Source: Syncephalis fuscata S228 (taxonomy: Eukaryota; Fungi; Zoopagomycota). From it: 64,000 nucleotides of DNA. The translations under genes and the position numbers were made by a program. A model generated the notes under the pieces. The model did not search any database and was not told the DNA's origin. It worked only from the letters and a program-made list of their open reading frames with translations. The stretch spans positions 620,001-684,000 of the forward strand of contig JAHLTZ010000001.1 in the NCBI GenBank assembly GCA_025786725.1, in the 5' to 3' direction. Of this stretch, positions 15,336-19,504 are shown in pieces (positions within the stretch are counted from its first letter, which is position 1; every line of letters begins with the position of its first letter).

Positions 15336-16087
15336 AGTGTAAAAAAGAACTGAAAAAGAAAAACGAAGGAGAAAGGAGAACAAAGTGGTCGCGTTTGTAC
15401 GCAGAACTGGCTGTGTGTGTGCGTATTATTGTTTTATAAAAACGTGTGTATGCGTACCGCTAATCAACTTAGTCGGCGTTTAAAGCGATATCGTTGGGAA
15501 TTTGTAGGAGAAGAACGGAAATGCTAGGCCGTCGTATTTTCTCGATGGAGAAAGAGAGAGCACACGTAACTGCTGTAGTACTAGAAGAAGTGTGCGTGTA
15601 TGCGTCGACACGTAAGCAGATGGATAATGGTGGTAGCAGTAATGGCAGGGGTCAAAAGTAGTCTGGTAACGATGTAAACTATCGGCGGGAAAGAATAGGC
15701 ATATGGTAGCATAGTGGCATGCAGATGCTATTTAATAAGGCGCCTGTTTATCATGGACATTTATTGTAACGAAGCAGGATAAGAAACGCAAAGTCCAACG
15801 CATCAATCTCATTGGCAGTACAGATCGTCGAAGCAAGAATGAGAGAGAAAGATGGATCTATAAAATCAGTGATAAGAAAGGAACAAATCTCAATAATGAT
15901 TGGACTATTCAATGACGTGCTTGCTTGTTATTTTGCAACTGTGATAATGGTTTTAATATGGTAAAAATATTTTATTGATTCTTTTTCCCTTACACACACA
16001 CACACGCCTTGTCTTCAGATCTTAAAAATATTACATTACATCTAAATGTGTGTACCTACTATAGAACACAAATGTTAGTGTTTAATC

Positions 16088-16241
16088 GTAAATGGAAGAG
16101 TATTATTCCAAAATGATGTGACATAACAAACAAAGGAATCAGGGAAAGAGTTGTCGTCTTGGATGTACTCGGGTGAAACACAGACTTGATAAATCAAGCG
16201 CATCATTTTCACTTGTCGTTGCCACGACATTGACCATTTAC
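16088..16241 (-). ncRNA. Unassigned structured intronic RNA (four-way junction), candidate rRNA guide or chaperone
   Basis: Nested helices GUAAAUGG/CCAUUUAC, UGUCGU-GGCA-ACGACA, GUGAAA..GCUUGAU-UU-AUCAAGU..UUUCAC, GAGUA..UCCAA/UUGGA..UACUC, inside intron 4 of the host. Confidence 0.6.
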
Positions 16242-16384
16242 ACATATTTGTTTATTAAAAATTAACTTACCATGCTTAGATAGATGGGTGTATGGATATG
16301 TATGACAGATCATCTAGTAATAGGAAAATAGCGTTGTTAGCATCATATTTAAACAATAAATAAATGTGAATAAAATCAATTAAT

Positions 16385-16465
16385 GGCTCAGAAAAAGGTA
16401 AGCGGTGAGTTATCTTCATGAAAGCCTCAGTAGCAGAACTGATCATTTGATTAATCATCATGGCC
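16385..16465 (-). ncRNA. snR61: Box C/D snoRNA, snR61/SNORD38 orthologue (25S Am1133, yeast numbering)
   Basis: ggcca-TGATGA..CAGTTCTGCTa-CTGA(D')..TGAAGA(C')..CTGA-gcc. The guide is antisense to conserved LSU GGUAAGCAGAACUGG, and the +5 rule lands on the A of GCAG. Confidence 0.92.
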
Positions 16466-16629
16466 AAAAAAGAAAAGGACAGAAAAATGGATAGATCTAC
16501 TTACCATAATATACTGTATTGGTAACAATACTTGTTGGACCATATAGGTGATACATGATATCTAGATTATACCATATAGTTAGTAAAAAGCCATTTTGAA
16601 CTAAACAAAGGTAAAGAGTAGAGAAAAGT

Positions 16630-16712
16630 GCTCAGATGGTGATGCATGTATTGTGTTTGGTAGAATCATTGTAATCATACAAGTTTCTATGGATATAAAC
16701 AATCATCATAGC
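16630..16712 (-). ncRNA. snR55: Box C/D snoRNA, snR55 orthologue (18S Um1269)
   Basis: gcta-TGATGA..ATGA(D')..TGATTC(C')..CATGCATCACCAt-CTGA-gc. The guide is antisense (one G-U) to conserved SSU UGGUGGUGCAUG, and the +5 position pairs a U. Confidence 0.88.
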
Positions 16713-16856
16713 GAAGAAGAGAAATGGATAAATAAAGATAAATACTTACCAAATGCCAATGGTCAAATAAATGAATAGAAATACAGAAAATGTCCTATAA
16801 ACAAAACTAGTTAGCAATCAGTACAATACTAATGGTATTTTAAAGCAATGATTGAA

Positions 16857-16987
16857 ATGGATCAGAAACGAGGAATTCCATTTGTTTGTATCAACAACAA
16901 GTTAGTCTACAGATCTGACCATGACACCGTAGTGAGCATGAGCAGGGATCGTGATTCAGGCATCAGGTGATACATTCATCATCCCAT
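16857..16987 (-). ncRNA. snR57: Box C/D snoRNA, snR57 orthologue (18S Gm1572)
   Basis: atggga-TGATGA...GGAATTCCTCGTTt-CTGA-tccat. The 13-nt guide is perfectly antisense to conserved SSU AACGAGGAAUUCC, and the +5 position pairs the G of AACG. Confidence 0.92.
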
Positions 16988-17573
16988 AGATAGAATGGCC
17001 AATGGTGGCAATAAGCGTACTTACAAGAACACGAATGACTGCAGCAGTACTCGTAATGTATGGATCAATAACATACAAGAGAAAAAAGTGGAGAGAAAAG
17101 AAGAATAGGCGGTGATGATGGGCATAAGCTGCACCATGATGGGCGGTTATTTATGGTCTATTTTTTCATTTTTTCATAAACAGGGGATAGATGGAAAGTC
17201 TATAAACTACAATTTATAGACAAGTAGCCAGTTACACAATTGTGAGAAGGGTTTTACTAAAATGTTAATATTAAAACTATTAGAGGCAAATGTTGTGATA
17301 GCTTTTATAGTTTTTAAATCTATGTCGTGTATATTGTCATTGCTTCATATGCTAACTAGAAAGCAAAGCAAAGCAAAATCTATTTATTGGCAATGTCTAC
17401 CTGAATGTCATTTTATATTGACATATCAATAAAAGAAAAGCCGACAAGTAATGTGTTATTAATTGTATGAATAAATATGCCGTATTGCTATGTGTTAGTA
17501 GTTACTAAATAATATTTATTAATACGAAATGACAAGTAAATAAACAACATACTAAATAATGAATAAAAGCGGC

Positions 17574-19504
17574 TTATTTGCTTACATAAACTGCATCCAA
17601 GTGCTTACGAGCTGTTGCAGCTGCTTCCGATAATAACATACGTGCTGCAACATATGTGTCCGGCCGGATAAGATATACGGCATGTTGGCCTAATTTTGTA
17701 CATTTGTACATATCAGCCATGGTTAAGTTGTCGTATTGTTTTCCTTGGTTAAGGTCAACAAGTACTGGCACATTGTTAAATTGCTTATTTAACTGTTTGG
17801 CTAGCGATGTTGCTTGAGTTGGTAATTCAGGCTCATTAGTATTGTGCTTCAAACCGTAAATCACAAATATTGGTTTAACTGGCGATTGATATGCCTCGAA
17901 TGTAACCATTAAGTCGGTCAGCTGACTAATGACATCTGCTGGTAGATGTGACGTGTTTGCTTCCGTTTTACTATTACTAACAGCGGCTTTACGACCATCA
18001 ATGAATATGATGCCTTTATACGACGTGTTGTTATCTTCGTAAAAATTGCGAACCCGTGTGCTGGTACGATTGTTTACATCTACGGCCTTACAATCAACAG
18101 CACGTGAGCCTGGTAGACATATAGAATCGGCACTCCATAAGAAGGAAAACCATGGCGAAGTAGCTTTGGTCCATGCTGGCGTATCAGCAAATATACCGCC
18201 GTGATTTGATACCGGATATTGAATACTTAGCTGTGCAGTTTTTTCCATTTGTGGGCGTGTAAGAAATATGGGTAGATAGCCCATTAGTGGCATTAATCGT
18301 GAAAATAAATTCATCTTTACTGGACTTAGCAGAACAGAAAGAAGATTTCCAGATAGCTTTAGAACACCATCGGCAACAGGTATTCTTTCTGTGGCATACG
18401 ATTTCAATATATCCGATTTAGCATGTCCATTGTAAACCATGCCTAATTTCCAAGCAAGATTCTCTGCGTCTTGCAAACCAGTATTCATTCCTTGTCCACC
18501 CGCCGGGCTGTGTACATGAGCAGCGTCACCACAAATGAATACACGCCCATCGTCGGATATATACTGCGAAGCACGGCGTTCATTAATACTAAACGCCGAG
18601 TATGACAATATATGTGGTTCGCCCAGATCACATGGCTGCACGCGACGTCTAATGACTTCAATTAAGGATTCCGCAGTTACTTCGGGTGATTCTGGACCCC
18701 AAAATGTAAATATACGGAATCTATTGCCAAGATGCGCGCGAGTAATACCAAGAAATCCTTCAGAGTGTTTGACAAAACTAAAATAGAAAATTAATATTGT
18801 GCATCTTGAATATAAAGACCACCTACCCTGCAGTCGGCATCCAGTCGGCATCGATTATTATGTCGCAAACGGCTATACGGTGATCGATAAACTTGCCATC
18901 AAATTTGGCACCAATGGACTTGCGTATTTTACTATGTCCACCATCACAGCCAATGAGGTATGGTGTTTGGCGCGTTATAATTTCATTTGAATCCACATTT
19001 TTCAGTTGAACAGAGAGCTGTTCATTGTCATCGATTACTTCATGTGACACGTATTCCCATCCCCATTTTGTGTAAATGTTTAGTTCGGCAAGTCGTTCAT
19101 GCATGACCTTTTCAGTGGTGTCTTGTCCACATCCTAATATCATAGGATACTCGCTACGAATGGCGCTAACTTGAACGCCTGGTTGATTGATGCCATTTTG
19201 AGAATACGAAATTCAGTAAATGGATTACTAAGCTTCATTAGTCTCTGAGTCAGTCCATAGCGGGAAAGCATTTCTAGGACACGAGAGTGTACGGCAGCAG
19301 CTCGCCATTCGGTGGTTGGTTTGTGATTCCGTTCTAATTAATAAAATGTATATTAGTTTATGATTACACATGGTTTTAATAGCTAACCATAAATTTCCAC
19401 GGAACACCAGCTTCAGCGAGAATAATGGCAGTCAGTAGACCAACGGGACCGGCACCAACAATAATGATGGGCTTCTTTACGGCTGTTTCCTGGTTCACGG
19501 TCAT
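17574..19504 (-). CDS. FAD-dependent monooxygenase (FAD_binding_3, phenol hydroxylase-like), multi-exon with frameshifts
   Basis: IIIVGAGPVGL (GxGxxG), LIGCDGGHSKIRK (DG motif), GDAAHVHSPAGGQGMNTGLQDAENLAWKL (GD motif), C-terminal YLIRPDTYV. Confidence 0.92.

Follow-up and report, generated by a model that had tools for sequence, protein, structure and literature searches.

The closest described counterparts of the locus treated here fall into two groups, one related through its genomic arrangement and the other through the modification of a short stretch of large subunit (LSU) rRNA. As to the former, snR57, snR55 and snR61 of Saccharomyces cerevisiae form a cluster that is expressed as a polycistronic precursor. 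As to the latter, RiboMeth-seq in Dictyostelium revealed two methylated 26S rRNA adenosines 3 nt apart, namely Am841, with CD12 as its guide, and Am844, the equivalent of the U18 site. CD12 carries a second guide assigned to 26S Um2580 and, like all Dictyostelium C/D snoRNAs except CD38, is encoded in an intergenic region, in contrast to the intronic location described below for Syncephalis. CD12 and DdR12 are one and the same RNA, since the probe published for CD12 has the reverse-complementary sequence of the DdR12 consensus in Rfam. Budding yeast has no equivalent of the Am841 site in the comparison table of the Dictyostelium work. The human SNORD126 site is likewise located 3 nt 5′ of a SNORD18 site (Am1313/1326) and is fractionally methylated.

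Here, we describe an RNA encoded in intron 4 of a snoRNA host gene in the mycoparasitic fungus Syncephalis fuscata, which is likely an unannotated, intron-encoded box C/D snoRNA of approximately 87 nt that is predicted to guide the 2′-O-methylation of a conserved LSU adenosine. The analysis covered a 64,000-nt stretch of S. fuscata S228 DNA (the window), to which all coordinates refer, as well as orthologous loci from three relatives.

The host gene and its intronic snoRNAs

The host gene is located on the minus strand and contains four introns of the GTAAGT...CTAAC...AG type with 5′ splice sites at positions 17024, 16749, 16504 and 16270. It adjoins an aspartokinase gene that, queried as an uninterrupted ORF, shows 98% identity to the S. 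fuscata gene and is 77–83% identical to counterparts in S. plumigaleata (L001), S. pseudoplumigaleata (L002) and a JGI metagenome contig (L003), and in all three of these loci the host gene is again found directly upstream of the aspartokinase. The metagenomic locus (JGI metagenome 3300044693, contig Ga0466961_0014637) combines the same intron 4 snoRNA with an aspartokinase that resembles those of Syncephalis (83% identity), which points to the presence of an uncultured relative in that sample.

When the host gene (window 15850–17250 (−)) was compared with the three loci by BLAST, merely four blocks were retrieved, one per intron, with 83–89% identity. The remainder of the introns proved as unalignable as the exons. 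Judged from the sequences, such unalignable exons combined with conserved intronic snoRNAs are the pattern of a non-coding snoRNA host gene.

Several further features of the surrounding region were observed. A conserved block 530–590 bp upstream of the aspartokinase start (window 15865–15925 (−); L001 9233–9267; L003 473–532) carries ACGTCA, CCAAT and a GATA-like TTATCACTGATA motif and looks like a shared promoter or regulatory element rather than an RNA gene. Toward the 3′ side, the host transcript region contains a short (AC)7 microsatellite (15992–16005). Directly upstream of the host gene, the window encodes a FAD-binding monooxygenase (17574–19143 (−)) in two ORFs that are presumably split by an intron. 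In S. plumigaleata, the FAD-binding monooxygenase (L001 15329–17317) is instead located on the far side of both a WAPL-domain gene and the aspartokinase, and this difference points to a local rearrangement.

The guides of the snoRNAs in introns 1 to 3 were compared with real eukaryotic rDNA taken from metagenomes. The snoRNA of intron 1 (16857–16987 (−)) is of the snR57 type, as its D guide forms 14 bp with the small subunit (SSU) sequence AAACGAGGAAUUCC, placing a G near residue 1570 at the fifth position. It is 88% conserved in the orthologues and gave zero Rfam matches, even at E ≤ 10. With ca. 130 nt this RNA is unusually long and contains an internal branch-like CUAAC at 16902. Intron 2 harbors a snoRNA of the snR55/SNORD33 type (16626–16714 (−)), whose D guide pairs over 13 bp with SSU GUGGUGGUGCAUGG, so that the fifth position faces a U near residue 1270, which is the snR55 site. 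Its match to SNORD33 (26.9 bits) is below the gathering score of 44, which makes it another snoRNA of the Syncephalis lineage that scores under the Rfam thresholds. Finally, intron 3 encodes snR61 (16385–16466 (−); RF00476, 49.3 bits against a gathering score of 45), which pairs over 11 bp with LSU AGCAGAACUGG. The rDNA pairing of these neighbors bears out an earlier note on this DNA, made from the window alone, in which the RNA of intron 4 had been placed in the snoRNA slot alongside snR57-, snR55- and snR61-type snoRNAs. As a member of the same host, the intron 4 RNA would be co-expressed with the other three.

The conserved core of intron 4

Intron 4 (16059–16270 (−)) was delimited by reading its signals in the sequence, i. 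e. GTAAGT at 16270–16265, the branch site ACUAAC at 16079–16074 with the branch A at 16075, and a 3′ AG at approximately 16060–16059. Its conserved block, which spans window positions 16128–16216, contains the core at 16130–16216 (−), i. e. the predicted box C/D snoRNA of about 87 nt including its terminal stem. This core is the only conserved block of the intron and is 83–89% identical in S. plumigaleata, S. pseudoplumigaleata and the metagenomic relative. A covariance model of the core (R1) scored 99–114 bits on all four orthologues and detected no paralogue in the window or in L001–L003, which together amount to about 100 kb.

In an alignment of the four species, the same order of elements is found throughout. 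The 5′ strand of a stem is followed by AUGAUG(C/U), then by GCUUGA-UU(U)-AUCAAGU, which forms a small hairpin, and by the invariant UCUGUGUUUCAC and C(C/U)GA, after which come an 8-nt loop, (A/G)AGACGA, CAAC with six to seven variable pyrimidines, CUGA and the 3′ stem strand. This corresponds to the box C/D snoRNA layout C – guide – D′ – C′ – guide – D, canonical in the order and the spacing of its boxes, with 68–69 nt from the start of C to D in all four species. The C box AUGAUGC (16200–16206 (−); AUGAUGU in the metagenomic orthologue) departs from RUGAUGA only at its last position, while six of the seven positions are invariant and both GA dinucleotides are kept. Among validated Dictyostelium snoRNAs, CD11a likewise has AUGAUGU, with the same change at the seventh position. 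The D box CUGA (16139–16142 (−)) is invariant, and the plausible D′ box (16169–16172 (−)) reads CCGA in all species except S. pseudoplumigaleata, which has the canonical CUGA. The C′-like box AAGACGA (16154–16160 (−); GAGACGA in two orthologues) is degenerate. Its invariant AGACGA retains both GA dinucleotides of UGAUGA, differs from the consensus at two positions and aligns with AUGACGA of Rfam DdR12. We infer that AGACGA is a putative C′ box. The earlier note had held a degenerate C/D snoRNA (C = UGAUGC, D′ = CCGA, D = CUGA) in reserve as an alternative, and it is this fallback that the orthologue alignment supports box for box.

The boxes are enclosed by a terminal stem, in which ACAAGUGAA (16208–16216 (−)) pairs with UUCCUUUGU (16130–16138 (−)). 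Of the cells of its nine pairs, 88.9% are paired across the four species, compared with 22–52% once the 3′ partners are slid along the alignment (alignment A3). Three pairs are altered on both sides, twice from A-U to G-C and once from A-U to U-A, and the duplex energies range from −6.3 to −13.9 kcal/mol across the species. In covariation shuffles, 44–51 of 500 reached the observed values, a comparison of low power given only four closely related sequences. The spacer hairpin between the C box and the guide (GCUUGA-UUU-AUCAAGU, 16184–16199 (−)) is 100% paired in the four species and invariant apart from one change of G-U to A-U. RNAalifold independently predicts both the terminal stem and this hairpin. 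With regard to placement, the 3′ end of the putative snoRNA is 55 nt from the branch A, and the corresponding distances in introns 1–3 are 46, 46 and 48 nt.

Conceivably, the core could be conserved within the intron and still yield no stable RNA, as in the case of an element that regulates splicing or of a snoRNA pseudogene undergoing decay, a view with which the slight deviations of the boxes from consensus would agree. Yet, the bona fide snoRNAs of introns 1–3 show the same identity of 83–89% in the midst of unalignable exons and intron remainders, compensatory changes keep the terminal stem, and the guide is invariant. This explanation is therefore barely credible. A reading of the region as an H/ACA snoRNA, with a GUGAAA...UUUCAC hairpin that has an internal loop and AGUACA as H box, was also tried and rejected: its 3′ half is unable to form a pocket hairpin, an ACA is missing, and by inspection conservation is confined to one 87-nt unit between the C and D boxes, in which no conserved ACA or H box occurs.

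The four-way junction fold

The principal proposal of the earlier note was a different one, namely that positions 16088–16241 (−) form a non-canonical four-way-junction RNA of 154 nt that acts as an snR190-like guide or chaperone, with an apical loop directed at helix 72–73 of 25S rRNA. The minimum free energy (MFE) structure calculated with ViennaRNA indeed consists of a closing stem and three hairpins, and it ends 8 nt before ACUAAC (16079–16074), just as had been described. However, its stability does not rise above chance, with −33.7 kcal/mol for the 154-nt fold against −28.4 ± 3.3 kcal/mol for shuffled sequences (z = −1.61; 11/200 shuffles at least as stable) and z = −0.85 for the whole of intron 4. 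Nor did covariation, which had been suggested as a check, exceed that of shuffles in the four-species alignment. In the orthologues, the closing stem, the first hairpin and the long arm are paired to only 62.5%, 54.5% and 61%, respectively, and the sequence beyond 16130–16216, including the long pyrimidine-rich arm, is unconserved. The two junction helices that do survive on the alignment are invariant and reside inside the conserved core. Since the outer stem, hairpin 1 and the long arm are not kept, the four-way junction is best regarded as the MFE fold of one sequence. Furthermore, an RNA of 154 nt would leave 13 nt up to the branch A, in contrast to 46–55 nt for the snoRNAs of this host gene.

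A similar picture emerged for the proposed rRNA contact. The LSU segment AGAAUCAG-CGG-GGAAAGA (GAAUCAG-CGG-GGAAAGA) is real and matches the loop at 7/7 and 7/7 positions in S. fuscata, while in the orthologues the UCUUUCC half retains only two to four of seven matches. The other half of the tract coincides with the invariant D box CUGA and the first bases of the terminal stem. Composed in this way of a variable stretch, the D box and stem bases, the complementarity to helix 72–73 in LSU domain V is not a conserved feature. With both the fold and the rRNA contact thus confined to S. fuscata among the four orthologues, a four-way-junction guide or chaperone is highly improbable. Taken together, the locus provides a cautionary case, in which a single-sequence MFE fold and a short complementarity hinted at a novel RNA class, while the addition of three orthologues led to what appears to be a standard snoRNA.

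The D′ guide and its predicted rRNA target

The stretch upstream of D′ comprises 18 nt that are invariant in the four species, an invariance of which short divergence time could be a partial cause. Within it, the D′ antisense element GUCUGUGUUUCA (16174–16185 (−)) occupies positions 13 to 2 upstream of D′ and forms 12 contiguous bp, one of them G-U, with the universally conserved LSU UGAAACACGGAC in 8/8 complete rDNA units, in most of which this pairing is the best match of the guide. Position 1 is mismatched, so that the duplex ends 1 nt from D′. The target sequence was read from the rDNA of other eukaryotes, in which all 117 loci share this stretch unchanged, as the search itself required. 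In viral contigs, the LSU pattern gave no hits. In 0.7–1.2% of the trials, a shuffled guide likewise formed 12 bp with no more than one G-U at some place in a rDNA unit of 6–7 kb, and a length of 12 bp is comparable to the 11–14 bp of the three accepted neighboring snoRNAs. No exact 9-mer complementary to the invariant GACGACAAC was found in rDNA. The earlier note had already singled out a part of this guide, CUGUGUUUC, as nearly antisense to GAAACCACAG. The latter does lie near the LSU segment discussed above, but its pairing with CUGUGUUUC is imperfect, and the true partner of this tract is LSU UGAAACACGGAC, which adjoins the U18 site.

In the resulting duplex, the fifth nucleotide upstream of D′ faces the middle A of GAAAC, which is also the middle A of CUUGAAACACGG. 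Going by the usual position relative to D′, this adenosine should be the site of 2′-O-methylation. It is located 3 nt 5′ of the U18/snR18 site and is equivalent to A646 in yeast, A1310/A1323 in human 28S rRNA and A841 in Dictyostelium 26S rRNA. The register follows from four human modifications, Gm1316, Am1323, Am1326 and Cm1340, whose residue types and offsets (−10, −3, 0 and +14) fit CCCGUCUUGAAACACGGACCAAGGAGUC in one way only. In this single fit, the middle A of GAAAC is the SNORD126 site (Am1323, previously 1310), and the SNORD18 site is the A of CACGG. Hence, the predicted Syncephalis target is the SNORD126 site.

Rfam searches at the gathering thresholds and at E ≤ 10 covered the window, its host gene and core, as well as one orthologue. 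No family reaches its gathering score for intron 4. The two top matches of the core in S. fuscata and S. pseudoplumigaleata are DdR12 and SNORD18 with 15–20 bits. For DdR12 (RF01562), 19.6 bits (window) and 15.7 bits (L002) compare with a gathering score of 70, and for SNORD18 (RF00093), 15.8 and 14.9 bits, respectively, with one of 41. SNORD126 is absent from the matches at E ≤ 10 on these two orthologues.

These matches raise the question of whether the RNA might simply be the Syncephalis orthologue of U18/snR18 and methylate the classical U18 site, the equivalent of yeast A649. Its antisense element covers the same LSU stretch as that of U18, the weak SNORD18 match aligns from the C box through the guide, and a separate U18 was not found in the available sequence, although this amounts to only about 100 kb. 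In the SNORD18 alignment, however, GUGUUUC and the UGA of D′ are set apart by three additional nucleotides, by which the U18 site is placed at position 8 instead of 5 and the target is shifted by 3 nt. An assignment to U18 would therefore need a flexible or misassigned D′ register, while this spacing is kept in four species, one of which has a canonical CUGA in that very register. Considering also that both scores are far under the gathering score, we regard a U18 orthologue acting at the classical site as improbable, and methylation of the middle A of GAAAC remains the preferred prediction.

A further observation concerns the invariant AGACG (16155–16159 (−)), a part of the C′-like box whose LSU complement, CGUCU, directly borders the D′ target on its 5′ side (context CCCGUCUUGAAACACGG). 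These nucleotides could provide 5 bp of extra pairing beyond the D′ box, and the match may equally be due to chance or simply reflect the C′ box.

Such a contact would also suit a C/D-type RNA that does not methylate at all, either a folding chaperone for pre-rRNA or an orphan, whose boxes would be too degenerate for catalysis. In its favor, the C box ends in C or U, D′ reads CCGA and C′ reads AGACGA, and, judged by eye, AGACG could add its 5 bp with LSU CGUCU beside the guide duplex to create a bipartite clamp. On the other hand, the geometry is that canonical for methylation, with the guide ending 1 nt from D′ and the fifth position falling on a residue that is methylated in two other lineages, represented by human and Dictyostelium. 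Seventh-position variants of the C box are moreover found in validated methylation guides. We accordingly give a non-methylating role only a slim chance and retain the interpretation as a methylation guide.

The second guide

The guide region upstream of the D box, CAACUCUUUCC (16143–16153 (−)), consists of an invariant CAAC and a variable remainder. Between C′ and D, the variable tract reads UCUUUCC in S. fuscata, CUUUCUA in S. plumigaleata, CUCUCA in S. pseudoplumigaleata and UUUUCCA in the metagenomic relative, which leaves the D guide 1 nt shorter in one species. In S. fuscata, the D guide (16143–16155 (−)) forms 13 bp with the semi-conserved LSU sequence GGRAAGAGUUGUC, with one G-U or, in some taxa, none. 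This sequence is located about 1.1 kb 3′ of the D′ target. The D guide of the metagenomic relative forms 12 bp with it, and those of the remaining two orthologues do not fit. A search of eukaryotic rDNA for a D guide target common to all four orthologues found none. The D guide thus appears to be fast-evolving, and GGRAAGAGUUGUC is a candidate target for S. fuscata and the metagenomic relative only.

Proposed maturation and mode of action

By analogy with intronic C/D snoRNAs, the spliced intron 4 would be debranched and then trimmed by exonucleases up to the terminal stem and the C/D kink-turn. If expressed in this way, the trimmed RNA would be expected to bind Snu13, Nop58, Nop56 and fibrillarin (Nop1). 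In the assembled particle, the D′ guide may pair with LSU UGAAACACGGAC, upon which the middle A of GAAAC would be 2′-O-methylated. The spacer hairpin has a plausible role in this arrangement. Counted up to and including the D′ box, 31 nt follow the C box, and formation of the hairpin would shorten the 27-nt stretch from C to D′ to about 12–13 nt of single strand.

On the evolutionary side, a more elaborate scenario may be drawn, according to which a U18-type guide was retargeted in Syncephalis by a 3-nt insertion, the site is independent of SNORD126 and CD12, the AGACG contact is used, and the D target is species-specific. This combination is rather unlikely. If retargeting were true, fungi would have gained, independently of mammals and Amoebozoa, a modification that is absent from budding yeast.

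Comparison with known snoRNAs and implications

The proposed assignment would fill an annotation gap by adding a fourth C/D snoRNA, so far unrecognised, to the host gene of snR57, snR55 and snR61 in a mycoparasitic fungus that diverged early. It also predicts, from sequence, a methylated LSU adenosine 3 nt upstream of the U18 site in Zoopagomycota. The predicted site is methylated in human, if only fractionally, and in Dictyostelium, and not in budding yeast. It therefore contributes a small data point on the turnover of rRNA methylation sites, i. e. their gain, loss or reinvention among eukaryotes.

With respect to genomic arrangement, the Syncephalis host gene resembles the snR57-snR55-snR61 cluster of S. 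cerevisiae in that the same three snoRNAs occur in the same order within a single transcription unit. In contrast to the yeast cluster, each snoRNA occupies its own intron of a spliced host, and a fourth snoRNA is added that has no yeast counterpart. To our knowledge, budding yeast possesses neither a modification nor a guide at the predicted site.

Among the RNAs that act on this rRNA stretch, U18/snR18/SNORD18 shares with the putative Syncephalis snoRNA an antisense element for the same LSU sequence (GGUCCGUGUUUC in U18, AGUCUGUGUUUC here), the use of a 5′ guide with a D′ box, and a weak Rfam match that spans the full length in one orthologue. The two differ in one C-G pair that is replaced by U-G in Syncephalis, as well as in the methylation position, which is moved by 3 nt. 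The Syncephalis RNA may be related to U18 by descent.

Dictyostelium CD12/DdR12 is likewise a box C/D RNA, and its 5′ guide with UGUGUUUCA is assigned to 26S Am841, i. e. the very residue predicted here. Its guide, its C′-like (A/U)GACGA and its CUGAUU align with the Syncephalis core, while its canonical GUGAUGA C box and its lack of a spacer hairpin set it apart. The likeness may simply be imposed by the shared target. Human SNORD126 guides 28S Am1310 (Am1323 in current numbering), which is again the same rRNA residue, and is intron-encoded as is the Syncephalis snoRNA, in spite of which no sequence relationship between the two is detectable. By the criteria of Rfam, the Syncephalis snoRNA is thus a member of none of these families, and on the basis of its guide it is predicted to be the functional counterpart of human SNORD126 and Dictyostelium CD12/DdR12.
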